From Perkinsela sp. CCAP 1560/9 (Eukaryota; Protista; Euglenozoa: Kinetoplastea), in the NCBI GenBank assembly GCA_965644495.1, contig CBFFSA010000082.1, positions 1-21,474 of the forward strand: a stretch of DNA of 21,474 nt. The letters run 5' to 3'. Every line of letters begins with the position of its first letter. Position 1 is the first letter of the stretch. Of the stretch, positions 726 through 19,399 are shown in pieces. The translations under genes were made by a program, and so were the position numbers. The notes under the pieces were generated by a model. The model had not been told where the DNA came from, ran no database searches, and worked only from the letters and a program-made list of their open reading frames with translations.

Positions 726-801
726 AAAAGAAATCAACAAGGTACAGAAACTGTATCTTTAACGATAAAGATACAGTTTCTGTACCTTGTTGATTTCTTT
801 T
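726..801. repeat. Perfect palindrome built from the SL (36-bp arms, 4-nt loop ACGA); includes SL copy 2 at 755-792
   Basis: 726-761 AAAAGAAATCAACAAGGTACAGAAACTGTATCTTTA is the exact reverse complement of 766-801. Confidence 0.95.
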
Positions 802-825
802 CCCTTTATATCATCCTTACGCCCT

Positions 826-3800
826 ATGGTGACAACCCGGTCCAAAGCTAAGCAGGGTACCGACTTCCAGCACGAAGCTAGCGCGCACAAGCTTGGCTCT
901 TGGGATCAATTTGAAGCCAATAAAGATCTAGTCGAAGGGGTGAGTACATTCGAGGAGAGTCTTTATACCACGCCACTTCCACCTGATCCCTCATCTGAAT
1001 TATTGGAGCGCGCTGACAAGATTGCCTGCGACATTAAGAACTCCACAGAAGGCGAAACGCCAGACACAGGACACCAGAATGCTACCACCGAAGAAGAACT
1101 GTTCTCCAGTGCCCGCCCGACGGAAAGCCTCGAGTTCCAATTCGAAGGAGCCAATTCCTCTTCACTCAGCCAATTAAAGTCCTCTAGAAAGGCTGTGAAG
1201 GAGAAGTACGAGCGCCATAACCGCAGGGTAGGCTGTGCCGAATATGACTATGCTGATAACAGGCTAGTTTTTCCCGATCTCACGCCTCCTGATCTTCGCT
1301 TCTCAGTAAAGGGTAGCAGTAAAGGCCGTAAAAAGAAGAAACGCCCGAAGGGCATCAATCTTTCTCAGCTGGGTGCAGTGTCCGGGGCCGACAGCGAGGA
1401 ACGCGACAATATAGAGTCCAGCGCGAATTCACCCGGGCCACGCACTCATGCCACCGGAGTCATGGACAGCCCGTCTATCAAATTGTCCCAAAAGGAACAG
1501 AACACTAACACCCCCACGGGTAAGCGTAAACGTCACGTGCAGGTGTCGAAACCAGGGCCACGCGATTCCTCAGATACCGAAAGGCTCAATCAACCCCCCA
1601 ATACCACTCCAGAAAAGCCACCTACAGTCAATGGAAACACGCGGAAATGTCCTTCTCAGGGATGTGCATGGCAAACTGTGCCTCACGGGGGCCAATGGCA
1701 ATCCTTTTATAACCACGTATCCCACAGACACGGGGACGAGGTGCCTGATACCTGGTGGAACGAGGAGGGACGTTTCCGATGCAGGGATTGCAACAGGCAC
1801 TACAACCTAAGCAAACAGGTCACCCATGCCGAAAACTGCGCTTTCCGCTGCTCTTCTCCCCCACCTATCTCCGAACCTACACAGACAGGGGGCGACCCGA
1901 GGGACAACCCTGCATTTTTTGCCGCACAAGCCGTCGCCGAACCCCTTCCCTCCCTGGCGTCAATCTGTTCGACACCTCTCAACACATGCAAAGACATTCC
2001 CAACAGCTGTCGCCAGGGGTGGGCGAAAGTCTTCTGTGATTGTCTCTCTTCCGCTGTACGAGACAATACAGTTGAGGCCTGGACTCTTCTCGCCATGCTA
2101 CCGAAATGCGTACTACCGGCACCTCATCGTGGGGGGAGCAGGGCAAAACTATCGTACGCCTCGCACGTTCGGAAGTGTCTCGCCCGGTGGTCACGGAAAG
2201 AATTTCTCCCCCTTTGGAACGAAACAATTGCGAGCCTACAACACAAAAAACGCGTCGCACAAGCACAGAGTCCGGAGGACGAGATATCCAAATCTGCTAT
2301 GCGAGCTGAAAGACTCGTTCGCGACTCGGAACTATCTCGAGCCATGGCTGCCCTAACCTCTGAACCAGTAGCCCCGGATGACGATGATACTTACACTAAA
2401 CTCCAAGCTAAGCATCCATCCCGACTCGCTACGTCGGTGAAACCCCTCAGTTCATCGACGGAAATGGGACCAAAACCACTTCGAGCCACAGAGGAAGACG
2501 TAACGCAGGCTCTTGCAACTTTTCACCGGGGGTCATCGGGTGGCGCTTTTGGGCTACGCCCTGAACACGTACAAGTGGCACTAGAGTACCACCATGACGG
2601 CCGTACGGATCCATTGGGTACACTGACCGACTTTACGAACCACATGCTCGCGGGGCAAGTGCCGCTCGAAGTTCAGTGCTATTTCGCTGGAGGCCGCTTA
2701 TGCGCGTTAAAGAAAGGGGAGCGCGACGTGCGGCCAATAGCGGCCGGAGAGACGCTCCGTCGCCTGGTGAGCAAAGTCGCCTGTCTCTCCGCCAAAACAA
2801 CAGCTCGTAAGCTCTTCAAAGGACACCAATACGGTGTGGCCACTCCAGCAGGGTCTGAGCGCGTCATCCATCGATGCAGACAGACATTCGATTCTCACGT
2901 TGACGACAATGACTTCATTCTATGCAAAATTGACCTGAAAAACGCATTTAACCATGTCTCACGGGACTGGATCATTGCCCTTACTCGCGAACACTTTCCC
3001 GCTCTCAGTCACTACGTAGATTGGTGTTACTCTTCGGACAGCCTACTTACTTTCGGAACACGCACCATTCCGTCTTCTGAAGGAGTGCAACAAGGCGACC
3101 CCTTAGGTCCTCTCCTTTTTTCCCTGGTCCTGAGAGAAGTAGCGGCGGAAATTCACGCGGTAGCCCCAATGCTCGATTTGAATCTGTGGTATCTGGACGA
3201 CGGGGTGCTGGCTGGATCATCTGCTGATGTGCGGCACGCATTCGACGTGCTGGAAACCAAAGGACCACAACGGGGACTCCATATCAACGCCGCTAAATGT
3301 GAACTCGCCTTACACCCCTCATCATCCCCTCGCGCCTCCGTTTTCCCTGACATCCCTGGCCCGAATAAAAATTTAGAGGGTAATTTCAACATTTTAGGTA
3401 GCCCAGTCGAATCCACTGAATACTGTCATAAATTCCATTTGGACAATGCCTTCGAACTGGCCCAAGATTCCCTAACCGCTATAACTTTGCTCGAGGATCC
3501 CCAGATCGCTCTCTCCCTCATCCGGCATTGTACAGGCTTCTGCAAGATGGTCTACTCTCTCCGTACCACCCCGACATCTGCACTGCAAGATATATGTCGA
3601 CGCCTGGACGACACTGTTCAGTCCACTGTCGAAAACTTTTTCCACCCACTTGGCGATGACGCCCGGAGACAGACACAACGAGACAAGCGCTTCGGAGGGC
3701 TAGGGCTCCGTTCAGCAGAGGAACATTCCTCTTCTGCTTACGTGGCCTCCGTGGCATTCGCATCAAGGAAGGATGGCTGGGCCCCCACCGAAGCAAAAGG

Positions 3801-4815
3801 TTTCGAAGAAGCAGTGAGCGATGTCAACAATCGCGCTGGACTGAATCTGGTAGACGGCGAAAATGGCACAATACCCAAGAGCATGGTTGTGTCAGATCGT
3901 TCCCTCTTTAGTACTATCGAAGCGAGCGAATCTAGAAATGAAGCGGTAGTTCCCAGACAACGGGATCTCAGTCACTCGATCTCTTCCCAGGAATACAACA
4001 ACGCGCTTAATACCGCTGACCCGCGGACGAGGGCCCGATGGATCTCTGAAACGGGGGAAGGAGCGTCGGAGTGGGCATTTGTTTTGCCTTCCAAGAAGAA
4101 CGGTCACGCATATACCCCGACAGAGTTCCGGATGCTGGTACGCTGGTGGCTTGGGGAGAACATATACCCCGGCACCCGACCTTGCCCCATGGACAAATGC
4201 ACGCAGCCGCTTGGTCCAGAGGGGGATCACGCGATGTCGTGCAAAAGCGGGCATGGTATCATTTCCCGACACAATGCTCTGGCAACACAGTTTGCGGCGG
4301 AGTGTTCCAAGGCCGGGCTCGCCCCCAAACGAGAGGTCAGCCTGGGAAACAAGGGTCCGGGGGGCACCCTCACTAGGCCTGCAGATGTCTTTATAGACAG
4401 CCACCTCGGTCGGTCCCTTGTACTCGACTTCGCTGTCACCCATGTCCAGCAACAAAAGTATACGGACACAGTCCGTGACGCTAACTGGGTGACGGCGGGG
4501 TCGTTCGCGGAACAATATGCCACCGTGAACAAGAGCATGCAACGCGCAGAGGCGACTGCAGCACACTTTAAGTTCGGAGCCATGGTCGTAGAATCCTACG
4601 GCTCGTGGTGTCCCAGCGCAATGTCTGTTCTCCGAGAGGTCGCAGTAGCTAGGGCGGCTAAATCGGGCAGTGACGTATCGAAGGGGGCGGCCTTACATCA
4701 GATTCTCACAGCTCTGAATGTAACACTGATGAGGTCGCAGGCCCGAATGCTAGTCTTGCGATTACCCGCAACGGGCCCCGACCTGGCTCTCCTGGGGTAC
4801 GGGAAGGAAGAGTAG
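826..4815 (+). CDS. CRE/SLACS-like retrotransposon protein, 1329 aa: LsmAD-like N-terminus, basic NLS-like patch, C2H2 and C2HC zinc fingers, reverse transcriptase, CCHC knuckle, restriction-like endonuclease
   Basis: The first ATG after the SL is at 826 (the ORF-track TTG start lies inside the SL). Zinc fingers: CPSQGC..HVSHRH and CRDC..H...C. RT: VRPIAAGETLRRL, KIDLKNAFN, GVQQGDPLGPLLF, WYLDDG, GGLGL. Knuckle and REL: CPMDKC..DHAMSC, RHN, RPAD..LDFAV, VESYG. Confidence 0.93.
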   Translation: MVTTRSKAKQGTDFQHEASAHKLGSWDQFEANKDLVEGVSTFEESLYTTPLPPDPSSELLERADKIACDIKNSTEGETPDTGHQNATTEEELFSSARPTESLEFQFEGANSSSLSQLKSSRKAVKEKYERHNRRVGCAEYDYADNRLVFPDLTPPDLRFSVKGSSKGRKKKKRPKGINLSQLGAVSGADSEERDNIESSANSPGPRTHATGVMDSPSIKLSQKEQNTNTPTGKRKRHVQVSKPGPRDSSDTERLNQPPNTTPEKPPTVNGNTRKCPSQGCAWQTVPHGGQWQSFYNHVSHRHGDEVPDTWWNEEGRFRCRDCNRHYNLSKQVTHAENCAFRCSSPPPISEPTQTGGDPRDNPAFFAAQAVAEPLPSLASICSTPLNTCKDIPNSCRQGWAKVFCDCLSSAVRDNTVEAWTLLAMLPKCVLPAPHRGGSRAKLSYASHVRKCLARWSRKEFLPLWNETIASLQHKKRVAQAQSPEDEISKSAMRAERLVRDSELSRAMAALTSEPVAPDDDDTYTKLQAKHPSRLATSVKPLSSSTEMGPKPLRATEEDVTQALATFHRGSSGGAFGLRPEHVQVALEYHHDGRTDPLGTLTDFTNHMLAGQVPLEVQCYFAGGRLCALKKGERDVRPIAAGETLRRLVSKVACLSAKTTARKLFKGHQYGVATPAGSERVIHRCRQTFDSHVDDNDFILCKIDLKNAFNHVSRDWIIALTREHFPALSHYVDWCYSSDSLLTFGTRTIPSSEGVQQGDPLGPLLFSLVLREVAAEIHAVAPMLDLNLWYLDDGVLAGSSADVRHAFDVLETKGPQRGLHINAAKCELALHPSSSPRASVFPDIPGPNKNLEGNFNILGSPVESTEYCHKFHLDNAFELAQDSLTAITLLEDPQIALSLIRHCTGFCKMVYSLRTTPTSALQDICRRLDDTVQSTVENFFHPLGDDARRQTQRDKRFGGLGLRSAEEHSSSAYVASVAFASRKDGWAPTEAKGFEEAVSDVNNRAGLNLVDGENGTIPKSMVVSDRSLFSTIEASESRNEAVVPRQRDLSHSISSQEYNNALNTADPRTRARWISETGEGASEWAFVLPSKKNGHAYTPTEFRMLVRWWLGENIYPGTRPCPMDKCTQPLGPEGDHAMSCKSGHGIISRHNALATQFAAECSKAGLAPKREVSLGNKGPGGTLTRPADVFIDSHLGRSLVLDFAVTHVQQQKYTDTVRDANWVTAGSFAEQYATVNKSMQRAEATAAHFKFGAMVVESYGSWCPSAMSVLREVAVARAAKSGSDVSKGAALHQILTALNVTLMRSQARMLVLRLPATGPDLALLGYGKEE

Positions 4816-4973
4816 CAAAGCGGCCAAGAGGTGGAAAACCTCGTGGGCAAGGGTGGGGCGGTAAGTGTCGTGGTTGCTTTGTTTGGTTCCTGGTTCTGCA
4901 GGGGGGTTGTGGCCAGCGTCGGACGGTCCTGCGGGCAATAAGGTCCGGGGTAGTGAGAGAGGTGGCAGGTTGA

Positions 4974-5023
4974 GGTTTGCTCGTTTCGGGTTTGCTTGGT
5001 TTGGGTTTGCTCGGTTTGGTTGG
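4974..5023 (+). repeat. Degenerate ~15-nt G/T-rich tandem repeat in the 3'UTR of element 1
   Basis: GGTTTGCTCGTTTCG / GGTTTGCTTGGTTTG / GGTTTGCTCGGTTTG. Confidence 0.7.
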
Positions 5024-5399
5024 GCTTTACATACATTTGCTAGTTTTGGGCTCACCAAAAAAAAAAAAGAAAAAGACATTTTATGTATAAAATGGTTTTC
5101 TATAGACGCAAATTAAGAAAATTTCATGTTGGAGTTTCTTGAACACACAACATTCTATAAATTGAATCAAAAAAAAAAAAACAAAACTGAGATAAAATTG
5201 CTAATTTGATTGCTTGTTTTCAACTCGTTTCCCCCCCCCCCCCCAATGGACCTACTTGGTTCGTCTACTGGGTCAAAATATAGAGGCAATGCCGCGACTC
5301 ATACTTCTCCCCCCTCATTAATTGCAAAAAAAAAAAAGAAGAAAGAAAGGAAAAAAAACAAAGACAAAAAAACAAAGACAAAAACACAAAAAAAATAAA

Positions 5400-5437
5400 A
5401 TCTTTAACGATAAAGATACAGTTTCTGTACCTTGTTG
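5400..5437 (+). other. Spliced-leader-like sequence, copy 3, heading element 2
   Basis: Identical to 44-81. Preceded by an A-rich tract and followed by AATT, not GT. Confidence 0.8.
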
Positions 5438-5473
5438 AATTATTTTCTTTTCTTTATCTCACTCTTACGCCCC

Positions 5474-8400
5474 ATGGTTGTTTTAACTCGACCTAAGGCG
5501 AAGCAGGTCTCGAACTTCGAGCGCGAGGTGAAAGCACACACACTCGGCTGCTGGGACCAATTCGACGCAAACAAGGACCTTGTTGAAGGCAAGAGTACGT
5601 ACCATGTAGACTTATACACTACGCCCCTCCCACCTAATCCTTCAGCTGAATCTTTACGGCGAGCGGACGAGATTGCACTCAGCATTACGAACTCTGTGGA
5701 AGGTGAGACACCAGATACAGGGCAACAGCAGACAAGCACGGAAGAGGAACTTTTCTCCAGTGTCCGTCCAACTGAGGACTTCGAATTCCAGTTTGCGGGA
5801 GCAGAATCTTCTTCACTCAGCCTATCAAAAACCACAAATAAGGCTGTGAAGGAGAGGTGCGAACGACATATCCGGAGGTCATACGACAACGAATATAATT
5901 ACGAAAAAGATGAATTGCTCTTCCCCGATCTAACTCCTGAAGACCTTACTGTGTCTGTGAATGGATGCGGAAAAGGACGGAAAAAGAAGAAGCGACCCAA
6001 GAGCATCTCCCTTTCCCAATTGTGTGCTGAGTCCGGGGCCGACAGCGACGACCGTGACACCGCACAATCAAGTTCCAACTCCCCTAGGCCATACACTCCT
6101 GAGGCTGAAAGTGACAGCAATCTGTCTGCGGCATCATCTCCGAAAAAAACGGACACAAAACCCCATGCGGACACTTCAGTAAGTCTCAAGCGACACCGAC
6201 GCCCATTAACCTCCAGAAACGCCGAGTCATCTAAAAGCACGCCCGCCCCCATTATTAGCACACCAAGTCGGCCCAGGAAATGCCCCTTGGATTCATGTAC
6301 CTGGGAAACAGGGCCGCACGGCGACCAATGGTAAGCCTTTTACAACCACGTGGCTAACAGACATGGGGAAGAAGTGGCGGAATCATGGTGGACAGAGGAG
6401 GGAAGATTCCTATGCCCGGGTTGCAAAAAGCACTACTCCATGCGCAAGCAAGCAACACACAAGATGCACTGCAGGTTTCGCACGCCGTCACCCAAACCTT
6501 CGCATGGTTCCTCCGCTGGCTCCAAAGATTACCCCGTCCCGCCCCCAAATTCCGTTACTGAGCACCACCCTGAGCAGCAGCTTAGCGAGAACACTATGCA
6601 AGGCGCCCCAACAGTGGAAGATCTGCCGTCCCTATCATCAGTATGCGCCTTGTCCGTCAATACCTGCAAAAATATCCCAAACAGCTGTAAGCCTGAATGG
6701 GCGAAAACACTTACCGAATGCATGGCGGCGGCCGTACGTGACAACACCATCGAGGCTTGGACCCTGCTGGCTATGTTACCTAAATGTGTAATTCCAGCAC
6801 CACGACGCGGCGGGGACAAGGGTAAAGCCTCATACGCCTCCCACGTCCGCAAATGCCTTTCCAGATGGAAGAACAAGGAATTTCTACCACTTTGGAACGA
6901 GGCGTTGTCAAGCCTGAAGCGTAAGCGGAAAAGTTCTCCACAGGCTCAGAGCATTGAAGAGGAGGATCAGAAAGCTGCGCTCCGAGCAGTACGCCTCGTG
7001 CGAGATGGTGAACTTTCCCGCGCAATGACTGCGTTGACATCCGAACCACTTGCCCCAAACGATGACACGACTTATCAAAAGCTCCAGGCGAAACACCCGT
7101 CTCGACTTCTGGGTCCAAGTCCGATTACCACGCCTTCTTTGGATATTAAACCGATCACCGCAACCGAAGAGGACATCATTACGGCGCTTTCCAGCTTTCA
7201 CCGAGGTTCCTCAGGGGGAGCTCTCGGACTTCGGCCTGAGCACCTACAAGTAGCAGTGCAATTCCATCACGACGCCAGGACAGATCCGCTCGGTACGCTC
7301 ATGAAACTTATTAGTCATATGCTAGCGGGCAAAGTACCACTTGAAGTCCAACACTGCTTCGCCGGCGGACGCTTATGTGCTTTACACAAGGGTCAGGGTG
7401 ATGTCCGCCCCATTGCCGCAGGGGAAACCTTCCGCCGACTAGCGAGCAAGATAGGATGTCTGTCTGCAAAGGCGAAATCCAGAACGCTCTTCAAAGATCA
7501 ACAATATGGAGTGGCGACGCCCGCAGGAGCCGAACGTGTTATCCACATTTGCAGGCGCCTGGTTGCGCACCACGTCAATAACGAGGATTTTGTGCTATGC
7601 AAGGTTGACCTTCGCAACGCTTTCAATCACATTTCAAGAAATAGCTTTATGGCCTTGACACGGCATCATTTCCCTGAGTTGAGCCCGTTCGTGGAATGGT
7701 GCTACAGTTCGGACAGTAACCTGACATTCGGCGCACGTGTAGTTCAATCCTCTGAAGGCGTACAACAAGGAGACCCGCTCGGACCCCTTTTGTTCTCGCT
7801 CGTCATGAGAGAAATGGCCGCAGAAATTAAGGCCGGAGCTCCTGATCTTCATCTCAATCTCTTGTACCTTGATGATGGCGTCCTTGCAGGCCAGGCTTCT
7901 GATGTACGTCACGCACTAGATATCATCGAAATTGGAGGGCCAAAGTGGGGTCTGAACCTCAATCCGTCCAAGTGCGAAATAATCACATACCCTTCCTCAT
8001 CTCATCAAACTACCCACTTTCCTGACATTCCCGGGCTCAACATCAATATGGAAGGTAATCTGAGCATCTTGGGAAGCCCCATCGGATCTACGACGTACAG
8101 CCGTCAGTTCCTCCTCGACAGCGCGATTTCCCAGGCGGAGGAATCCCTTGAAGCGATCGAGAAACTGGAGGACCCTCAGGTCGCTTTCTCTCTCATCCGA
8201 CAGTGCACAGGGTTTTGCCAGATGGTTTACTCCCTTCGCACGACGCCGACGGACGAACTACTGGACTTATGTCGCAGACTCGACAACGCCGTTCAGCGTA
8301 CGGTTGAAACGTTTTGTCGCCCACTGAGTGACATGGCTCGACGACAAGCACAAAGAAATAAACAGTTCGGCGGTCTCGGCCTTCGCTCAGCGGAAATGCA

Positions 8401-9490
8401 TGCCACCTCAGCGTACGTAGCTTCAGTAGCTTTCGCTTCCGACAAGGATCGATGGGATGCAAATGTGGCTGAGGGCTTTTCTTACGCCGTGGAGGACATT
8501 AACCGGCGTGTAGGGGGGTGTATGGTGGACAAATCTACCGGGAAAATCCACAAGGACTCCGTCATAAAGAGATGCCCCTTCTCGCCCTCCCCCGATATTG
8601 ACCTTTCTCAAGATTTGGCGATTCCTCGACAACGCGATCTCAGTCATGCGATTTCAGCGAGAGACTTTGAGGAAGATTACGCAAGAGCGGATCCCCGCAC
8701 TCGGGCTAGGTGGCTCTCACAAACGGGCGACGGGGCATCCAACTGGGCCTTCACGGTTCCCTCAACTCTCTGCGGTCATTCCTACACCCCTACTGAATTT
8801 CGGACTCTGATTCGTTGGTGGCTCGGGGAGAGTATATACCCTCAAGGTCACAACTGCCCGATTCCGAATTGTCGCCTCCCACTCGGCCCTGGGGGGGACC
8901 ATGCGCTAGCCTGCAAGTGCGGCCACGGAATCATTACAAGGCACAACGCCCTAGCGGAACAGTTCTCCGCTGAATGCAGCAAGGCCGGGTTGAGCCCACA
9001 GAGAGAAGTCTCTCTGGGAAACAGGGGTCCGGGCGGCGCCCTCACGCGACCCACAGATGTCTATGTCCGGAACGGTGGTCTCGGTCAGGCCCTCGTCCTT
9101 GATTTCGCTGTCACACATGTTCAGCAACAAAAGTATACGGACCTGGTCCGTGATGCTAACATGGTGGCAGCCGGGTCATTCGCCGAGAGGTACGCCGTCG
9201 AACACAAGCGGAAGCAACGGGAGGAAGCTGAAGAGGCGAAGACCAAGTTCACAGCTATGGCTGTCGAAACATACGGATGCTGGAGTCCGGCCGCTATGTC
9301 GGTCTTGCGGGAAGTCTCGAAAGGCCAAGCTGCGACCTCAGGTGGAACACTTTCGCAAGGGGGGGCGTTACAGCAAATACTAACAAGTCTGAACGTCACC
9401 CTCATGCGCTCCCAGGCGCGTATGCTCGTTCTTCGCCTCCCCTCGGCGAACACAGGCCCTGCACTTGTGGGGTATGGCAAAGAAGAGTAA
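5474..9490 (+). pseudogene. CRE-like LsmAD/ZnF/RT/REL ORF interrupted by one in-frame TAA at 6332-6334
   Basis: Track ORFs 5432-6334 and 6350-9490 are in the same frame. GPHGDQW*AFYNHVANRH aligns with VPHGGQWQSFYNHVSHRH of element 1 (CAA vs TAA). RT (YLDDG) and REL (RPTD..LDFAV) are intact, and both proteins end GYGKEE. Confidence 0.88.
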
Positions 9491-9584
9491 GGAAAACTTC
9501 TGGCCTGGATGTTGGTCGAGTCGACAGAGTCTATGCTCACGCCTAGCCCGCGAGGGCTAGGTACCCCAAGTGAGGTAGCACACG

Positions 9585-9701
9585 GGAAGTAATGCATGAC
9601 TACCTACAAGGAATGTTATGCACACTTCCTGTGGGAGGCTGAGGTCGGATGATACTATATACTAAGTAAGGGATGGGAAGCATGAAAGGGGGGAAAGTAT
9701 T
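9585..9701 (+). repeat. 117-bp perfect inverted repeat, left copy
   Basis: GGAAGTAATGCATGAC...GGGGGGAAAGTATT is the exact reverse complement of 16013-16129. Confidence 0.95.
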
Positions 9702-10190
9702 GTTGTTGTTGTTGTTGTTGGTAACAAGAGCGCCTGCAATCCCCACATGCAAGCGCCGCAAGTACCACTCCGGCTCCCGAAATTGTTCCGGGTACGGGGA
9801 CGCAAGGCTCTCCTAGGTCCTTCACCAATGACAGAGAACACTCCGTAGTTAGCCTACCATGTGTCAATCCCACTGGGAGGGTTCCTGATCAAGCACGAGT
9901 GCCGCTTTTACGCTTTAGAGTAGTGTAGCTTTTATGTTTCGGAGGTTCTTCAATTAATTATGCATGTGTAAGCAAGGAATTTACGTAGTGAGACGTCTAT
10001 GTCAATGTGTGAATGTAGATATTGTGTGGTATATAGAGCATGTATTTGTGCACCCGCTCAGGAGAAAACAAAATTATTAAAGGATATTTTGTACAGTATA
10101 ATGACATGCAGGACCGTAAGTGAAAGTATGAAAATAGCTGATGTCGTATTCTATTTTACGTTTGTATGCTCAGCGGATACCTAAATGTCT

Positions 10191-11924
10191 TCAGTCTCTT
10201 GATATGAATGTGAGGCCCTGTTCTGTGAAAAGTCTCCATGCTTTCTGCAAGCGTTTCCATGAATTGTACAATCTGAAGTTCAATTCATCACTAGAGAACA
10301 TCCTTTTCGGACGAGTGCCTATGTCAGCTACATTTTCTTCTGTAGGTATATCACAAATGATGAGATTACCCGCAAAGCACTCATGCTAGCTGATGACCTC
10401 GTCCAAGGGATGCACACGAGAGTACCCCTTGTCAAAAGCACGAGAAGCCGCGAGATTGTCGCTTGCGATCACCATATTAGCGTATCCATGCTCGGTAGCC
10501 ATGGTGATCGCTTGTGATATGGCTGTCGCTTCTGCAAGCGCAATCGGCAGGTCGCACGACTGCTCGAGTAGGCGGTCCTTACAGATATTTCCGTTTTCCA
10601 TAGGCCACACCGCCCAGCGAGAGGTGGTTGCATCAACCGCAGTGTAGAAAACACGTTTCTTGTATGTCAATCTGGAAAACATGGCCCAGTCCCGGGGCTT
10701 ATTATTCATAGAAAGAACGCGACACATTCCTGCCTGTATCAGAGACCGACATGGCTTATCAACCGGTACGCTCCAGTCGGAGATTTCGCCCAAGATACTT
10801 TGTTGCTTGGAAATTCGACCTAGATTTCTTGTCGCCACGCCCAGTATAGCGTAAGCATGGCGCAAGTAACCTGCGAATTGATACAGTTTCCTTGCAGATA
10901 CAATATCCATACGGCCCGCTGCAAGTGCCCAACTCTTTACAATAACTGGGTCTGGTATCCATTTTGCCCTTCCTTCGCTTTGTATGATTTTTATGCCGCA
11001 ATATGTAAACGAGCAAGTTCTATTTTCCAAAGTCATGTATTTCGTGACAACGTTGAAAAGCTTGAAATTTCGCTCAAGGCGATAATACCAATCTCTTACT
11101 GTTTGTTTACAAGATACGACTAGAAATGAGTCGTATAATAGGGCAATGAATCCTCCCTGGGATAAACTTATTAGACCTGGAGCTTCAGTGCATTCATATA
11201 AGGTTTTATCTACGTTCAAGTCGAGATCTCCCTCTTCTTCGTATAGCATTATTGCCCACATAATGCTTTGTGCAATGCCGCATGCATGCTTGTAACCCAT
11301 CGGTAATACCGCGGGTCGACATATCATAGGTCCATGCTTTATACAACAGGCATGTCCAAGACCAGATGAGATCGGTATCTGGTAGTAGCAGTTGCGGATG
11401 TCCCCATGCAGAAAACAGAAACCATTCATTGCGCAATCCCCCAACCGAACTAGAGCGCGGACGAGTACTTGTGTGCTCGGCACGTGAAAGGGAACACCCT
11501 CCCCGACAACACGTTCATTGGTCCAGCGCAAGTCAAAAATTGCTCGCGAATACGTCCCATCCTTAAGTACTGCTATGTACTTTCCAAACCCTCGGGCCAT
11601 CTCCTTTGTAGTCGATATCAATACCCCACATTCTTGTAGGTAACGAATGTGCCTCCTATACTGGGAGGAGTCTGGCTCAGTCTTTTCAATGTATTGGGTG
11701 TCTGGCGGCAAGGGATCAGTGCCTATAAGGGAGATTGCCTGTCGCGAAAAGGGGAAACGGTCTAGGCCTGCGCTATCTAACCGGATACCACCTACATTTT
11801 GTAGAGGGTAGAGAGTATCCGAGTCGTGTGCAAAGCTTCCGCGTCTGCGAAAATCGCTATCCTCCGGTGCGTAGTACGCATCAAAAGGGGAGGACAGTTC
11901 AGAGCTTAGAAGTTCGGTATCCAT
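10191..11924 (-). pseudogene. Reverse transcriptase-RNase H of a YR (DIRS-order) retrotransposon, with an in-frame TAG at 10386-10388
   Basis: RT: SRAIFDLRWTN, GDIRNCYYQIP, VLPMGYKHA, LLYDSF. RNase H: AVDATT, AEATA, ASDN. Reading past the TAG gives 64 more aa, including IPTEENVADIGTR (the terminal RNase H NxAD motif), ending at TGA 10191-10193. Confidence 0.85.
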
Positions 11925-12213
11925 TGTTTTGTGTGCGAAGTGCGTTTGAGATATAATTTATATCATATAATTTATTCTACTATGGGTGATCTATTTCCTA
12001 CACAGCCACTATCTCCACATTTCTTAACTTTTATAGTTGGTCCACTTGTCACAGTTTATTGTGACTTTTACTTCAATGACAGTGTGTAACTGTGTTCCCA
12101 TATCTCTCGTCCTTCTCGATACGATTCTACTTATCACCTGTTTATCTAAAGTGTTCTAGTGATGCATACATTGTGTGCTTTACAATAATGGGACTGATTG
12201 TAAATTATTTATT

Positions 12214-13083
12214 TTATTCCATAGAATAACGTGTTGCAGTGAGTTCTGACATCCAGCGCCCTCTTCGAAGACGCGTGCTCAGATCAACTCCTTGCCGTGT
12301 CAAGTGTCCAGCGCAGCCGTGGCGCAGACAGTGGAACGACCATGTTTGCTGGCTGTTCCATCCAAATCGCGCGGCCGCGGCCGCTATCAAGCGATTGGCT
12401 TGCACCTTGTTCCAAGTCGGAAAGAGGCTTGATGTTGTTGAGATTGTTTTGAAGTACCCGAGTAAATGGCGTACTTCAGGTGCTTGTACCGTATCAACGG
12501 CAAAGTGGTGACGACCTTTCCCTCCACGAATTTTTATTAGTACATCGCTTTCGCTGATTTCCACGTCTGATGTCTGAAGACCTACGAGTTCGGAGTGTCG
12601 CAAAAGGCCAAAGTAACCAATTGCAAATCCTTGACCATACGTAATCTCTCCCTGGTCAATACAATATGTGGATAGTACGCGAAGCTGGTCACGTGTGATG
12701 GAGCCCCGCGGCTTGGGGTCTAAACAAATTTTGAGCACCCCTTTAAATCGCCTTCGAAATCGAAGGGTTTGCGACCAACACTCGCTCTCTGGAAGGTCCT
12801 CAATTTGTCGCCAAACCAGGGCAGCGCGAAATGCTTCCAAGGTGGAGGGTCTGTAAAATCTCGACATGCTAGCACATAAGGCAAGGAAATTCTCTTCTGC
12901 CATGTTGCATGCACCATGGACACCCATAAGGTGTTCCAGGCGATAAAAATATTGTGCTCGTTTTTGAGCCGTTCCCGCCGAAACGCCCACCTGAGCGAGC
13001 TGTCTATGAATTCCCACTTGAAGAAGAGAACGATACCCTCTCTGAATTTCTGCATCCCGCGAGGTTCGAGACTCTAGTGTCAT
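12214..13083 (-). CDS. Tyrosine recombinase (YR) of retrotransposon, 289 aa from the first ATG
   Basis: Catalytic set present: GLLRHSE (R), GGKGR (K), SFHCLRHG (HxxR), GRW (W), TRY (Y). ATG at 13083 has an AG 8 nt upstream on the minus strand. Confidence 0.9.
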   Translation of the reverse strand: MTLESRTSRDAEIQRGYRSLLQVGIHRQLAQVGVSAGTAQKRAQYFYRLEHLMGVHGACNMAEENFLALCASMSRFYRPSTLEAFRAALVWRQIEDLPESECWSQTLRFRRRFKGVLKICLDPKPRGSITRDQLRVLSTYCIDQGEITYGQGFAIGYFGLLRHSELVGLQTSDVEISESDVLIKIRGGKGRHHFAVDTVQAPEVRHLLGYFKTISTTSSLFPTWNKVQANRLIAAAAARFGWNSQQTWSFHCLRHGCAGHLTRQGVDLSTRLRRGRWMSELTATRYSME

Positions 13084-13432
13084 GTTGAGTGCTAGAAATG
13101 GCGGAACAATAATTACATTATACAGTATGTAGTATACGTATGATCTGGAGTTTTCATAAAGTAGACACGTACAACTGGCTACCGTGTGCAACGATTCTTA
13201 AATAGCTGAAGTATATAGCTACTTCGTAATAGAACACTTGTTTATAAATATTGTGTCGGCACACTTATCAGCACCCATAATATATTTATCGGCATCCATT
13301 TTTAGTATCTTACTACTTTTTTGGGAGTTTTTATCAAATGTACGTGAAAATACTTTTCTAGTGTTTGATACGAACGCTTACTTTGCTTTCCACTCTTTCT
13401 TTCATACTTATTTTCATTTTGTAGTTCAATGT

Positions 13433-14497
13433 TTATTCATCGCGCCCGCGTTTGCCATGTCTAGGGAGAAATGGTTTTTCATGGTCGCGATGTTGACTAG
13501 CTTTGCAGTTCCGGGCCTGGTGCCCCCTTTTTCCGCAGTTCCAGCACGTTCCACCAGATGTACTGGAAACCGTTTGTCTAAAGCCATAACGGGGCTTTAA
13601 GTCCGGAGGAGCGCCGCGAGCGGATGCGCGTCCTTCAATATTCAGACTCGGACGAGAGTGATGTACCTGCGACACCGCACGTGAATGCGCGGCGAGATGC
13701 GCAACAATGGACTTGTTGCTCGTATCGACTGAATTGTCCCGCATGAGGGATTCCAGCGTTTCACGGGACACTGAGACTCCCTCGTGCCGCAGTCGATACG
13801 ACATTACGATCGCACCGAGCTTGCACAACAGCGTCCACACGCTCAGACGAACCCCGTCGTCTTTCGCGTTCGCGAAGGGGACACCTGGTGGAATTTCGGT
13901 CAGTGCCTTGGCGTAGTATGCCCAGTCCAAACGTCCTGCGGCAACGTCACAAACTTGGCGTTTGACATTCGGAGTAATCCAGGGCTCCGTGCAGAAACCG
14001 GTCTGGGTAAGGCACGTGTGGATCGCCTCCCCGCACCGGGGGTCTTCTTGGGTCCCGATAATGGATCGAAAAGCCTCGCGGAGGTCTTTAGACGGGTGCT
14101 TCGTATTTGCTTCGGGGTGATGCGTCTGAGAGTTCACCGTAGGTTTTTCGAGAAGAGACGCCTCTTCTGCACCAAGCTCATCACGAAGCGCAACAAGGAC
14201 TTGCGCGGGCACTTCGCTGCTTGCAAATGTACCATTTTGTACTGCAGCCAACGCGAGACGAATGCTCCGCGAGCCTGGTACACTGCTGCCTCTTCCCGCG
14301 TGCGCGCACGCACGTTCTAGGAGAGGATCGATTGGCATGCGCTCTTTCGCGAATTGGATTGCCCCGGGAATAACGGTGAGTAAATCCTGACGAACAGTCA
14401 GTCCCAGGCGTTTCATTGAGCATATTTGCTTAAATGCCTCCTCAGCCGAAACAGTGGGTGCTGCAACAGGCACCAATTCGGGGATAGCATCAGACAT
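13433..14497 (-). CDS. Gag-like protein with C-terminal CCHC zinc knuckle
   Basis: CWNCGKRGHQARNC fits CX2CX4HX4C. First ATG at 14497. Lies upstream of YR and RT-RH on the same strand. Confidence 0.82.
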   Translation of the reverse strand: MSDAIPELVPVAAPTVSAEEAFKQICSMKRLGLTVRQDLLTVIPGAIQFAKERMPIDPLLERACAHAGRGSSVPGSRSIRLALAAVQNGTFASSEVPAQVLVALRDELGAEEASLLEKPTVNSQTHHPEANTKHPSKDLREAFRSIIGTQEDPRCGEAIHTCLTQTGFCTEPWITPNVKRQVCDVAAGRLDWAYYAKALTEIPPGVPFANAKDDGVRLSVWTLLCKLGAIVMSYRLRHEGVSVSRETLESLMRDNSVDTSNKSIVAHLAAHSRAVSQVHHSRPSLNIEGRASARGAPPDLKPRYGFRQTVSSTSGGTCWNCGKRGHQARNCKASQHRDHEKPFLPRHGKRGRDE

Positions 14498-14808
14498 TGT
14501 AGTATTTTGAAAAACGACCAAAGACGTAAAACATGCGTTTTTACACTGCTTACGGAGTGAGAAACTCACAGCCGATTACACATTACCTAAAGATTAATCC
14601 AACCGTAACAATATCTACATCAAGACGGGGCTATCCTTCAAATCAAGCAGCCGTGTAAGCCTAAATTAAACGATAACTTGCATCCCGTGCCGATTCTTGC
14701 AAACTAGATATTTTTGAGTCACATCACGACTCATATTACCAAAGGTTGGAGTTATTAACTCGTCACAAGGTAACCTGACGCGCCGCTTCGTACGGCATTT
14801 TCAAACGT

Positions 14809-15871
14809 ATCACAAGCTTAAAAACTGCGCTTGTAACATACAGAGCGCTTGGCGCACGATCACGGCGCTATATTCCTTGCGTTTAACGTAATTACCGAGC
14901 CAATGGGCTCATGTAGTGCTCGGCATGGCAACTACATCACAAACTTAAAAGCTACGCTCGTAACACACAGAGCGCTTGGCGCATGATCACAGCGCTATAT
15001 TACTTACGTTCAACGTAATTACCGAGCCAATGGGCTCATGTAGTGCTCGGCATGGCAACTACATCACAAACTTAAAAGCTACGCTCGTAACACACAGAGC
15101 GCTTGGCGCACGATCACGGCGCTATGTTCCTTACGTTCAACGTAATTACCGAGCCAATGGGCTCATGTAGTACTCGGCATGGCAACTACATCACAAACTT
15201 AAAAGCTACGCTCGTAACATACAGAGCGCTTGGCGCACGATCACGGCGCTATATTCCTTACGTTCAACGTAATTACCGAGCCAATGGGCTCATGTAGTGC
15301 TCGGCATGGCAACTACATCACAAACTTAAAAGCTACGCTCGTAACACACAGAGCGCTTGGCGCATGATCACAGCGCTATATTACTTACGTTCAACGTAAT
15401 TACCGAGCCAATGGGCTCATGTAGTGCTCGGCATGGCAACTACATCACAAACTTAAAAGCTACGCTCGTAACACACAGAGCGCTTGGCGCACGATCACGG
15501 CGCTATGTTCCTTACGTTCAACGTAATTACCGAGCCAATGGGCTCATGTAGTACTCGGCATGGCAACTACATCACAAACTTAAAAGCTACGCTCGTAACA
15601 TACAGAGCGCTTGGCGCACGATCACGGCGCTATATTCCTTACGTTCAACGTAATTACCGAGCCAATGGGCTCATGTAGTGCTCGGCATGGCAACTACATC
15701 ACAAACTTAAAAGCTACGCTCGTAACACACAGAGCGCTTGGCGCACGATCACGGCGCTATATTCCTTACGTTCAACGTAATTACCGAGTCAATGGGCTCA
15801 TGTAGTGCTCGGCATGGCAACTACATCACAAACTTAAAAGCTACGCTCGTAACACACAGAGCGCTTGGCGC
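14809..15871. repeat. 127-bp tandem repeat, about 8.4 copies, with 381-bp higher-order periodicity
   Basis: ATCACAA recurs at 14809, 14936 and onward every 127 nt. Diagnostic variants recur at 14981/15362, 15121/15502 and 15171/15552. Confidence 0.95.
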
Positions 15872-16012
15872 TCGCTCGCATTACGTGTCATGGATTTTGA
15901 GAGATAAAGGAAAACATGCAATGGCAGTACGTGAAACCAGTGCTATGATATTTATCGATCTAATTATCTGCATTGTCTATAAATTTATAGATTTTTTTTT
16001 TTTTTTTTTTTA

Positions 16013-16129
16013 AATACTTTCCCCCCTTTCATGCTTCCCATCCCTTACTTAGTATATAGTATCATCCGACCTCAGCCTCCCACAGGAAGTGTGCATAACA
16101 TTCCTTGTAGGTAGTCATGCATTACTTCC
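16013..16129 (-). repeat. 117-bp perfect inverted repeat, right copy, next to a T-tract (poly(A) on the minus strand)
   Basis: Reverse complement of 9585-9701. T run at 15992-16011. Confidence 0.95.
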
Positions 16130-16315
16130 TTTCGTGGGCATCGGTCTCCTTTAACCCTGCCGGTGCAAAGCAAAGGTCGGATGTAATCCCCCCCCTCATT
16201 CGGTCGTATTTCCCCCTAGCCTTCCATCACCTTTCCACATTTCCTGAGAAATGTGGCCCCGGGCTTTGGACCGGAATTGCAGGGTTAAAGGAGACCGATG
16301 CCCACGAAAGGAAGT
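16124..16315. repeat. Long hairpin or MITE-like unit with 37-bp perfect inverted arms
   Basis: 16124-16160 is the exact reverse complement of 16279-16315. Further nested stems: CGGTGCAAAGC/GCTTTGGACCG and CCACATTTC/GAAATGTGG. Confidence 0.9.
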
Positions 16316-16534
16316 GAATCTCCTCCCCGTCGACCAGCATCCTGTTTCGCGACCGTGTCGCTGTCGACACAGGCCCGCGCCTGCGCCCTCCCGTATAGCA
16401 AGGGAAGGGTTCACAAGTCAGGCCGTGGAGAGGTCGAAAGACCCGGTCCGGAACGCGCGAATGGATTGGGTCTGGATTGCTTGTTTTTATTTTTACTGTG
16501 TCTTGTTTGTCGTATATACTTAGGGGAGATTGAA

Positions 16535-16691
16535 TTGCTAGTTTTGGGCTGAGAAAAAAGAAAAAAGAAAATATACTTCTGTGGAAATAAAAAGAATTGC
16601 AAAAAAAAAAAAAAAAAAAACTCTACTCCATACATAAAAAGTTAGACTCAATACTATTCCCCCCAACAAAAAAAAAAAAAAAAAAAAAAAA
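16535..16691 (+). repeat. Stacked retroelement 3' tails with poly(A) tracts
   Basis: 16535-16550 TTGCTAGTTTTGGGCT equals 5037-5052. 16625-16666 matches 662-703 at 41 of 42 nt. Each is followed by A runs. Confidence 0.75.
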
Positions 16692-17339
16692 GCGGACGGG
16701 GTCCTGGGGTTTGGAGGTTGTCCCTATAATTTTGGAAGGTTATGGATGTTAATCGGTTAACAGCTCTTTATTCTCACGCCTTGTTTTTTCGGAAGCAAGG
16801 TTCCCCAATGTGAGGTAAATATGAGTAAAGGTTTCCTTTGCTCTGCGGTTAGCGCCTTAATGTTTTTTTGCCGCGTCCCTGTTGACACGGCCCTACGCAT
16901 CACGCCTAGTTGCTCCACACTTCTAGGTACACAAGTTGGTCTAGGGCAGAGGTTAAAAGCGTAACCTGCGTAGCTCGTGTGAGCTTGTAAAGGGCGTGGC
17001 AGTGGACTGGTCATCTATTGCTATCGTTATCCTTTTGTGAGTTCTGGGATGGTATATGAAAAATTATTTTACTATGTGATTGGGCATTTCTTTGTTATTT
17101 ATATTGATTGTGTGACGTGTGTGTGGGCAGGTTGGCCGAGGGTTCCGGTGGGGGGGAATCCCGTTAACAACGTGACACATGATTATTTGTTTTATGCAGG
17201 CTTTCTTTTGAACGAGGTATAAGCGTGTGAATTCTATCTATATATCGTATTATGTGTTCTTTGATTTTGGGACGATTTGGAAGTGTGATTATATTAGTCA
17301 TAGGTATTTGCTTATATTTGTTTGTTACTTATATGTTTC

Positions 17340-19399
17340 ATGGAGCCCCCTCGGCGTGGATTTCGTTGTAGAATCATCGCCTTAGCAAAGCCGAATAACG
17401 GGGTAAGACCGATAGCGATGGGTGACACAATGCTCAAAATAAGTGGCTCAATCCTGCTGCAACGTCATGAAAACTCGTTGAAAAGGTTCTTCCACCCTAT
17501 GCAACGTGGTGTCTTAGAAAAAAATGCATGTGAAGGAATCGTTCACGAGCTTCTTGATGACTACAGCAACGGACACACTATTCTTTCGGTAGATTACACC
17601 AACGCATATAACACTGCACAGCGCTCAGCAATTGCTCAATCCCTGCAGGCGCACAAAGTTTTCAAGCCGTTTATGCGCATGTTTTATTGCGAATACGGAA
17701 ATCCCTCGGGCCTGCTCTTCTTTGCCAACAATCGACTACATTCTATACTTCAGAGCACTTCCGGAGTGCGGCAAGGCTCAGCTCTTTCCTCTCTGTACTT
17801 TTGTTCACTAATACAAGGTGCGTTGGTGGAAGTCTCTGATCTTTTTCCAGAAGTGAAAATTAGAGCATACATGGATGACGTTACATTGTCCTCAAAAAAT
17901 CGCATCTCACTGGAAGCCGCGTTCTTACATCTCAGAGAGCTATCCACTGACCTTGGCCTGCACATAAATTATTCAAAATCAGAATGGTTCAACGCTGAGA
18001 GCAGTAAGAATCGGAACAGTCATCCTGATGCTCTTCGCTCCCTAGGCGTCACCCATTCTGACAAGACAATCAAAATCCTTGGAGCCTACATCGGGGATCA
18101 CCAAGAGGTCAGCTCACTTCTGGTCAAAAAACTAAAGAAGCACCAATGCCTGTTCCGTAGGCTTCGTCGAATGGGGCCCAGCAACATTTCACTGGCTGTA
18201 CTGCAACGCTGTGCGCTCCCACGTCATGATTATCACCTGCGTGTACACCGTCCAGAAGACTCGCTTCTTATGGCCCAAAAATTTGATGAACAAGTTAATG
18301 ATATTGTGTCGCACTGGTTCTTTGCTGATCCTATCTCTATCAAGCTATCGTCACTTCCACAACACCTAGGAGGACTTGGTTTGACACCGTCAACATTAAA
18401 ACATCGTTTCTTTTTCGACACCGCGCGCAAATCGATTGATGAGCGAACACTATCCAATAAAGCTCCGGTAGTTTTGCGCAAGTCGAAAGGAGGCATTCCC
18501 GATGATAATGGAAGCTCAAGCCGTACAGCCAAGCATCAGACAGCCAGAATTCAAGCATCAAAAGCTATGAAGACGGAACAAAAACTATTTGCCACCGAGT
18601 TACGTAAGGATAGCAGAATAGACTCCATACTAAAACGCACAACGACTGCCTTTCGACATCTTCCTTCAACTAGCGGATACGTTAATCCTTACCTTTTCAG
18701 ATACGCTATCATGTTTAGATTAGGCATCAAACCGCCTTCGTTGCCGGATCAAGTGAGTTGCCCTGGATGCGCTGCTCAGATAAAATCAGAGGAAATCCTT
18801 CACCACATTGTGGGTTGTACAAAGTGTTCTGGAATGAACGCTACACGAAAACACTCATCTCTAGTGCGCTTTCTAGCCGAACTTTGCTCAAAAGCAGGCC
18901 TCCAGTCCGTCATAGAACCTCGCGCTTATTCATCCTTCTATTGTACCAAGTGCAAGGCACACGTCTCCGCTGATGCGATTGATAACCATCCGTGCCGCGC
19001 ACGAAGGATAAGGTCAGGCCCCGACCTCGGAATTATGTGGCCCCATATGGGTGAAGTACTTTACGACCTCACAGTTGTCCACACCGGTAGCCCAAGCTAT
19101 CGAAAAATGACAGAAGCTCAGCTCCTGCAAAATGCTATTGAGAGAAAGCAGAAGAAATACGTTGAGAAGGGGGGATTGATGAAGACTTTTTTCGCTGCAT
19201 CTCCATGACAGAAGGCGGTTTCTTACACAGCCATACGAAAAATCTCCTTTCCTGTCTAGCAAAGAAAGCCGAACTTAAAGTCCCTGAAGTACTAGAAGCT
19301 TTTCAACTTGAGATTGAAAAGCTTAATGCATATACAATAGTTGCGCAACTGCGCGATTATCTACCCCGAGCATCGTGGCTGGGTTCACTGCAATCGTAA
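17340..19399 (+). pseudogene. Third CRE/SLACS-like RT-REL ORF, 5'-truncated, with a -1 frameshift near 19169-19193
   Basis: RT: VRPIAMGD, VDYTNAYN, GVRQGSALSSLYF, AYMDD, GGLGL. Knuckle and REL: CPGC..HIVGC, RKH, GPD..YDLTV, KQKKY. The -1 frame continues IDEDFFRCISMTEGG..., matching the REL C-terminal F....E.G motif. Confidence 0.85.

Follow-up and report, generated by a model that had tools for sequence, protein, structure and literature searches.

An LsmAD domain of PBP1/ataxin-2 type at the head of a spliced-leader-bearing, R2-like retrotransposon family in a Perkinsela genome

How does a domain of the host protein ataxin-2/PBP1 come to stand at the front of a retrotransposon protein, and what could it do there? 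These questions are raised by a stretch of 21,474 nt from Perkinsela sp. CCAP 1560/9 (contig CBFFSA010000082.1; the whole stretch is called the window below), part of a genome assembly of 21 Mb in 110 contigs. The features of the assembly point to a euglenozoan genome with a spliced leader (SL) of kinetoplastid/diplonemid type. Near the start of the window lies a retrotransposon, element 1, whose features are all on the forward (+) strand. It encodes a single, uninterrupted open reading frame (ORF) of 1329 aa (826-4815, with the ATG at 826 and the stop at 4813-4815). An initial annotation had proposed that this ORF opens with an LsmAD domain, encoded by window positions 895-1119. Our profile comparisons confirm that the N-terminal module is a genuine LsmAD and not a chance motif.

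The translation of 895-1119 (+) matches the protein quoted in that annotation exactly, from GSWDQF to LFSSARP. Pfam LsmAD (PF06741) matches element 1 at 31.7 bits (E 2.2e-7, profile positions 5-69 of 72; the curated gathering cut-off is 25 bits). The module spans 868-1125, corresponding to residues ~15-100 of the 1329-aa ORF, and a profile built from the elements themselves scores 131 bits there. An alignment of the module from 13 divergent copies (A1) was compared by hhalign with 26 cellular LsmADs that include the host PBP1 (A3); the two aligned over the whole domain (81 columns) with a probability of 99.9%, E 4.1e-32 and 38% profile identity. BLASTP of the element module against host PBP1 gave 47% identity over 51 aa (E 2e-12). 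The four blocks of the domain that had been reported to occur in order are all there and are conserved across subfamilies: GSWDQF (895-912), STF/Y..E.LYTT, a helix around ERADKIA and, after a TPDTG motif (1057-1071), EEELFSSARP running to 1119. Sixteen columns of A1 are invariant; W, Q, F, N, Y-T-T and E are among those that lie in or near these blocks. When the A1 profile was searched against 1.84 billion representative proteins it returned 1288 matches; those checked outside the element's own kin are ordinary SM-ATX + LsmAD (+PAM2) proteins, aligned at their LsmAD. Pfam is weak in some subfamilies of the element, with no match in P0006 and 17 bits in P0011.

The element thus has the LsmAD in common with Ataxin-2, Pbp1 and trypanosome PBP1 over the full length of the domain, but it lacks the rest of those proteins, namely the SM-ATX/Lsm domain, PAM2 and the disordered C-terminal half. 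The absence of Lsm and PAM2 had been noted initially and holds up under a direct search: SM-ATX is unmatched in the element ORF even at E up to 10, and the PAM2 pattern occurs in none of 21 element ORFs, whereas host PBP1 has a PAM2 at residue 434. The element domain also has features of its own. TPDTG is invariant in mid-domain, and PIP stands where cellular LsmADs have KLD. No solved LsmAD structure turned up in PDB sequence searches that used the element N terminus or the Lsm-LsmAD part of host PBP1.

The remainder of the ORF identifies the kind of element that carries this domain. A reverse transcriptase (RT) domain occupies 2710-3312 (Pfam RVT_1, 65.8 bits), with YLDD at 3190-3201. The nearest solved sequences to it are R2 proteins (8gh6, E 1.6e-6), and an atlas search with the whole ORF returned generic RT clusters only. 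The C-terminal part (4006-4812) joins a CCHC knuckle (4183-4242) to a restriction-like PD-(D/E)xK endonuclease with the motifs RHN (4267-4275), E (4333), RPADV (4375-4389) and DFAVTH (4426-4443). In an alignment of the last 269 residues with 34 relatives (A2, 35 sequences), C, C, C, H, E, D and D are invariant and the CCHC histidine is nearly so. An AlphaFold2 (AF2) model of the endonuclease part reached a predicted local distance difference test (pLDDT) score of 91.6. When the model was compared with the PDB by Foldseek, R2 proteins took the first seven places (E 1.7e-5 to 1.8e-2, probability 1.0), and PD-(D/E)xK nucleases came next, among them Hjc, MspJI and cap-snatching endonucleases. Taken together, the RT, the CCHC knuckle and the R2-like endonuclease fold therefore show that the element is a single-ORF non-long-terminal-repeat (non-LTR) retrotransposon of the restriction-like-endonuclease (RLE, R2-like) type. 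Between the LsmAD and the RT lies a basic stretch, KGRKKKKRPK (1321-1350), which recurs in copy 2 and whose composition makes it possibly a nuclear localisation signal. It is followed by two zinc-finger-like motifs (1648-1839), C-x4-C...H-x2-H-x-H and C-x2-C-x11-H-x4-C. Both of these Cys/His motifs recur in copy 2 and in P0258 and are conserved between subfamilies, and neither was matched to a zinc-finger family in a Pfam scan of the ORF. The proposed order of LsmAD, zinc fingers, RT and endonuclease is borne out, provided that the fingers are called only zinc-finger-like.

The element had also been labeled CRE-like, and that label survives in part. The endonuclease is of the R2/RLE type, and there is a broader likeness to SLACS, CZAR and CRE1/CRE2: these, too, are non-LTR elements of euglenozoans with a single ORF, an RT, a C-terminal restriction-like endonuclease and a tie to the spliced leader, and their N-terminal zinc fingers have a possible counterpart in the zinc-finger-like motifs of element 1. 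CRE-clade elements, however, occupy one fixed insertion site inside SL RNA genes, so that the leader is split around the element. The element described here has instead a near-complete, intron-less leader of its own as 5' end and a poly(A) tail, and its copies lie outside SL genes, mostly behind A-tracts; the label is therefore only partly correct. No named CRE, SLACS or CZAR sequence is among the 120 RT/endonuclease relatives listed in our search, and no report of an LsmAD in the CRE clade was found in the literature searched. R2 elements (Bombyx mori, zebra finch and turtle; PDB 8gh6, 9dou and 9nl2) provide the best RT match and the endonuclease fold, but are only 10-16% identical in sequence in the endonuclease part. 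R2 targets 28S rDNA, and we know of no R2 element with an LsmAD, a leader head or poly(A) dependence.

The leader head reveals how copies arise. A true SL RNA gene elsewhere in the genome (L032) consists of a 38-nt exon followed by an intron, GTATGAGAAG. The head of element 1 (757-792) is identical to this exon at leader nt 3-38 and is fused straight to the 5' untranslated region (UTR; 793-825). In 18 of 21 copies examined, the SL exon is likewise joined directly to the element 5'UTR, 48-69 nt upstream of the ATG. Most of these copies keep leader nt 3-38 in full and a few have a shorter leader; nt 1-2 are variable. Copies end in poly(A) and lack the SL intron. Their upstream flanks vary, and about 12 of 18 consist of a poly(A) run. 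Element 1 itself closes with a 3'UTR and poly(A) tail (4816-5068, A-run from ~5057), the tail being delimited by the end of its similarity to another copy, L041, which is 99.5% identical across 4308 bp (window 761-5068). The L041 match starts inside the leader at 761, rather than at 757 where the head of element 1 begins, because the leader of L041 is shorter. We considered and rejected insertion into an SL gene as the source of the leader, as the flanks differ among copies and the SL intron is absent after the leader. Leader-headed, poly(A)-tailed copies with differing flanks therefore stem from mature mRNA. The element mRNA is trans-spliced and polyadenylated, and reverse transcription returns the whole mature transcript with its leader to the genome, mostly at A-rich tracts.

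At the 5' end proper, the heads of copies L041-L057 read AAT-, AAA-, TAT-, ACT- or GAA- before CTTTAACG. Variation of this kind at nt 1-2 would be expected if the RT makes errors on the cap-4 nucleotides of the leader, which are hypermethylated. Leader-like sites number ~730 across the genome. A second dispersed repeat family (L033, L035, L036 and L038; contigs C5, C1 and C3) begins with a 5'-truncated leader, continues with GTACATTTT... and contains a conserved CCCGGAAACGGGCAT...GCCCGTTTCCGG hairpin. On contig C15 (296874-312893), seven or more HSP70 genes follow one another head to tail with a period of 2366 bp, an arrangement typical of kinetoplastids.

Element 1 belongs to a large and diverse family. 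Pfam LsmAD finds 105 sites in the genome, 71 of them above the cut-off, and the element-specific LsmAD profile recovers at least 150 modules (the best 150 of 216 candidates), each scoring at least 98 bits and many lying in ORFs of 1150-1484 aa. The endonuclease profile likewise yields at least 150 genome sites (the best 150 of 509 candidates). We compared 20 full copies from ~10 subfamilies, a set that does not include the 1299-, 1341- and 1396-1404-aa subfamilies; the LsmAD module is kept in at least 10 subfamilies. These subfamilies are old, since synonymous sites are saturated in most pairs. In the pairs with computable synonymous divergence (dS), the ratio of nonsynonymous to synonymous divergence (dN/dS) is 0.07-0.13 for the LsmAD, 0.05-0.08 for the RT and 0.10-0.27 for the linker. 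Across all 14 pairs, dN of the LsmAD (0.11-0.40) is close to that of the RT (0.09-0.38), and dN of the linker is higher (0.27-0.96). Purifying selection constrains the LsmAD module to much the same degree as the RT.

LsmAD modules also occur apart from the RT. A locus on contig C30 (L068, positions 2000-7000) and contig C62 contain tandem arrays with a period of 2.28 kb and at least 17 units. Each unit has a leader and then an ORF of ~170-200 aa that joins the LsmAD module to unrelated, partly hydrophobic sequence, and has no RT.

Where did the domain come from? The best Pfam LsmAD match in the genome is a gene on contig C3, which we assign as host PBP1/ataxin-2 because it has SM-ATX (31.1 bits), LsmAD and PAM2. 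Scored against the element profile, the LsmAD of host PBP1 reaches 77 bits and that of an environmental PBP1-like protein, P0143, 84 bits, compared to 50-61 bits for ordinary ataxin-2 proteins. In a maximum likelihood tree of 149 LsmADs (93 columns, quick search, unrooted), all element modules fall on one side of a branch with an approximate likelihood-ratio (SH-aLRT) support of 96, and host PBP1 and P0143 are in basal position among the cellular sequences. The capture from the host lineage suggested initially is in keeping with this result: the element LsmADs group in a single clade, to which host PBP1 is one of the two nearest cellular sequences. Such a topology fits one capture before the subfamilies diverged, and we infer that the LsmAD was probably taken a single time from the PBP1 of the host lineage, without its Lsm and PAM2 parts, before the subfamilies split.

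A second potential donor was rejected. In Paradiplonema papillatum, proteins with a PDZ domain, two LsmADs and an RRM domain (P0132 and relatives) show that LsmADs occur outside the ataxin-2 architecture in a euglenozoan. However, P0132 is encoded by a cellular gene that has introns and no RT in its vicinity, the LsmADs of this family group with the cellular clade, and no orthologue was found in the present genome. On the element side of the tree, one sequence comes from an ORF that lacks an RT. This is P0154 (L026; contig C16, reverse strand), a 360-aa ORF with an unrelated 260-aa N terminus and a C-terminal LsmAD, which may be a domesticated or decayed derivative of the element.

The combination appears to be new. 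Among the 150 matches listed of the 1288 returned from the 1.84 billion representatives, no protein with LsmAD and RT comes from another source; the element-like matches that we traced are all from ENA assembly ERZ24900291, which contains sequences identical to the present genome. The 120 RT/endonuclease relatives listed include sponge and metagenome proteins at 28-43% identity, and the only LsmAD carriers among them are seven 'ena' proteins. A survey of 216 orthologues found the LsmAD always adjoining an Lsm domain (PMC4105795), and a 2026 survey of ataxin-2 chimeric proteins makes no mention of reverse transcriptase or transposons (PMC12898128). The initial annotation knew of no described non-LTR element with an LsmAD, and we found no earlier description in the literature searched. 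An LsmAD in an R2-type retrotransposon is undescribed in the sources that we searched.

Relatives of a different composition came from JGI metagenome 3300050212. Two proteins, P0021 (L074) and P0025 (L075), are 41% identical to the element across RT and endonuclease and end in the MLLE domain of PABP, which binds PAM2 (46.8 and 49.3 bits, respectively). No LsmAD was found in either. The P0021 contig is one whole element, beginning inside a leader that ends TCTGTACTTTATTG and finishing in poly(A). By its leader head and poly(A) tail it belongs to another euglenozoan and shares the life style of the LsmAD elements. The LsmAD elements and these sister elements are both leader-headed and poly(A)-tailed, and both bear a module of the PABP-PBP1 tail complex. 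They differ in that the module is from PBP1 and N-terminal in the former but from PABP and C-terminal in the latter. The MLLE-bearing element (L074:265-5661) also encodes a 2A-like ribosome-skipping motif, DVEKNPGP, near its N terminus. Our literature search found nothing on an MLLE domain in a non-LTR retrotransposon.

What might the LsmAD do for the element? The reading that we favor, although we see the case for and against it as evenly balanced, is that the host-derived LsmAD, captured once, docks the ribonucleoprotein (RNP) of the element to host mRNP machinery. The orphan LsmAD would serve as a protein-docking module of the ORF protein. The ORF protein would bind its own mRNA in cis, and its LsmAD, by mimicking PBP1, would engage the usual LsmAD partner. 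The DDX6/DHH1 helicase is a candidate partner from the literature, in which the Lsm/LsmAD region of ataxin-2 is reported to bind DDX6 (PMC4105795; also cited in PMC12898128); other candidates are members of the PBP1-LSM12-PABP tail complex. That the module might recruit or decoy the PBP1 machinery, with which MKT1, LSM12 and PABP work in trypanosomes, had been put forward initially as a possibility. Tethering of PBP1, LSM12, MKT1 or PABP to a reporter mRNA raises expression in trypanosomes (bioRxiv 10.1101/2020.03.02.973057). The element RNP could thereby join the host machinery that acts on poly(A) tails and in granules. Such docking might improve stability, translation or RNP assembly, and might hold the RT near the poly(A) tail, where reverse transcription would start. 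The MLLE-bearing sister elements lend indirect support to this putative docking role since they indicate the same host complex.

Several observations weigh against this reading or the data beneath it. With dS saturated in most pairs, dN/dS derives from a minority of pairs only. The unrooted tree was computed from 93 columns, and P0154, a non-RT ORF, lies on a long branch inside the element clade. The AF2 model of the LsmAD module is weak (pLDDT 67), with one confident helix at module residues 43-57. In flies, target binding suffers only mildly when the LsmAD is deleted (PMC7946432), and the domain may thus need the adjoining Lsm domain, which the element lacks. A Pfam search for the AD domain of LSM12 type, made with no working control, found none in the genome, and in one possible RNA run coverage was on the leader only. 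The literature cited also describes the isolated LsmAD as folding poorly and as lacking RNA binding, and places the known Mkt1 and PABP contacts elsewhere in the protein; the Mkt1-binding site of yeast Pbp1 is at residues 491-549, outside the LsmAD (PMC12345631). A complex prediction for the element LsmAD with the Lsm domain of host PBP1 scored 0.02 and counts neither way.

An alternative, which we consider unlikely, is that the domain took on a role apart from PBP1 partners after its capture, such as self-association, subcellular routing or the binding of a new ligand. The element-specific changes would accord with such a shift, in that the TPDTG invariant in the element clade replaces the mid-part of the cellular domain and PIP takes the place of KLD. 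The LsmAD has, in addition, been linked to ataxin-2 localisation signals (PMC4105795, PMC11898529). Yet the invariant blocks of the element modules are those common to cellular LsmADs (W, Q, F, N, Y-T-T and E-E), and their constancy argues that the ancestral contact surface has been retained.

A decoy or antagonist is an explanation that we hold to be rather improbable. Here, free LsmAD would titrate a partner away from host PBP1 and disable a control such as granule-based repression or decay of the element RNA. An LsmAD that comes without the Lsm and PAM2 parts serving the other contacts of PBP1 would suit this purpose, and the at least 150 copies, together with the LsmAD-only ORFs (~190 aa) of the C30 and C62 arrays, could supply the domain in bulk. 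Against this, module and RT form one covalent chain in all of the full-length copies examined, and the LsmAD elements have no 2A-type motif that might release the module. A covalent fusion without a release site suits cis-acting docking better than a soluble competitor.

It is very improbable that the module is a neutral passenger, a piece of PBP1 mRNA gained by template switching and merely carried along. Non-LTR elements are able to pick up fragments of host transcripts. However, the low dN/dS of the module, its RT-like dN across subfamilies that are synonymously saturated, its retention in at least 10 of them and a linker that evolves two to three times faster are not what this explanation would lead one to expect. 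We give next to no credence to chance resemblance or a gene-model artefact, such as a chimeric ORF created by insertion into a PBP1 copy: the domain is short (~80 aa) and missed by Pfam in some subfamilies, but its profile match is strong (hhalign E 4e-32), the identical architecture recurs at 150 or more sites, and the ORF is present as such in the raw sequence downstream of the leader.

The sister elements invite a bolder extension of the docking reading. We tentatively speculate that leader-headed, poly(A)-tailed RLE elements of euglenozoans captured pieces of the tail complex at least twice, as LsmAD and as MLLE, and that either piece might tether the RT protein to the tail of the trans-spliced mRNA that encodes it and start reverse transcription there. 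We regard this extension as possible but doubtful.

The rest of the window contains further traces of retrotransposition. Immediately upstream of element 1, positions 726-756 are an inverted copy of its 5' end, comprising part of the leader and ~10 nt of 5'UTR (identified from the sequence and repeat family D7). This segment abuts the leader and is a perfect inverted duplicate of 771-801, giving a palindrome with 31-nt arms and a 14-nt loop. It is missing from L041 and thus particular to the insertion of element 1; it may be a scar of snap-back or twin-priming integration. Further upstream, from 46 to ~720, is a 675-bp unit whose head is the spliced leader and 5'UTR start of the elements and whose 3' end reads ...TTGC(A)10. 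It has no long conserved ORF, and a 98% identical copy adjoins the element copy L048. By these features it looks like a non-autonomous passenger of the elements' retrotransposition machinery, akin to short interspersed elements.

Downstream lies element 2, a member of a separate subfamily with ~70% DNA identity to element 1. It has a spliced-leader head (5399-5437, +), also present in its sister copy L048, an ORF (5474-9490, +) with one in-frame TAA (6332-6334) and an LsmAD module (5522-5776, +; Pfam 28.7 bits). Element 2 is 99.2% identical to L048, whose frame is open. In L048, the counterpart of window 5380-9593 runs straight on into that of 16310-16550, which marks an insertion of 6.7 kb in the 3'UTR of element 2 (9594-16309). 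The displaced 3' end, with its A-rich tail, follows at 16310-16570 (+) and is 94% identical to the L048 3'UTR. The insertion comprises a tyrosine-recombinase (DIRS-like) element and a 127-bp satellite (14682-15997, ~10 units). Within 12217-14569, Pfam Phage_integrase and zf-CCHC match ORFs on the reverse strand, where 12217-13191 encodes a tyrosine recombinase and 13436-14569 a Gag-like protein with a zinc knuckle. An RT is encoded separately, by an ORF at 17322-19205 (+). The recombinase, Gag-like and separate RT ORFs point to one or more DIRS-like elements. Rfam and tRNA scans of the window gave no match.

The capture of host domains by mobile elements is in itself well known. For mobile-element biology, the LsmAD adds a new kind of captured host domain, in an R2-type retrotransposon, and the leader heads of the copies mean that the template for transposition is a mature, capped, trans-spliced mRNA. 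The LsmAD elements and their MLLE sisters together suggest a dependence on the poly(A)-tail and mRNP-granule machinery of the host. For the domain itself, these elements offer a natural case in which an LsmAD has been retained without an Lsm neighbor, under strong purifying selection, in at least 150 copies and many old subfamilies. Its retention without Lsm argues for an independent interaction module and makes it a simple bait for the partner. If the anchoring of the RT protein on the tail of its own mRNA holds true, the orphan LsmAD would be shown to be a self-sufficient binding module and would provide a route to its partner.

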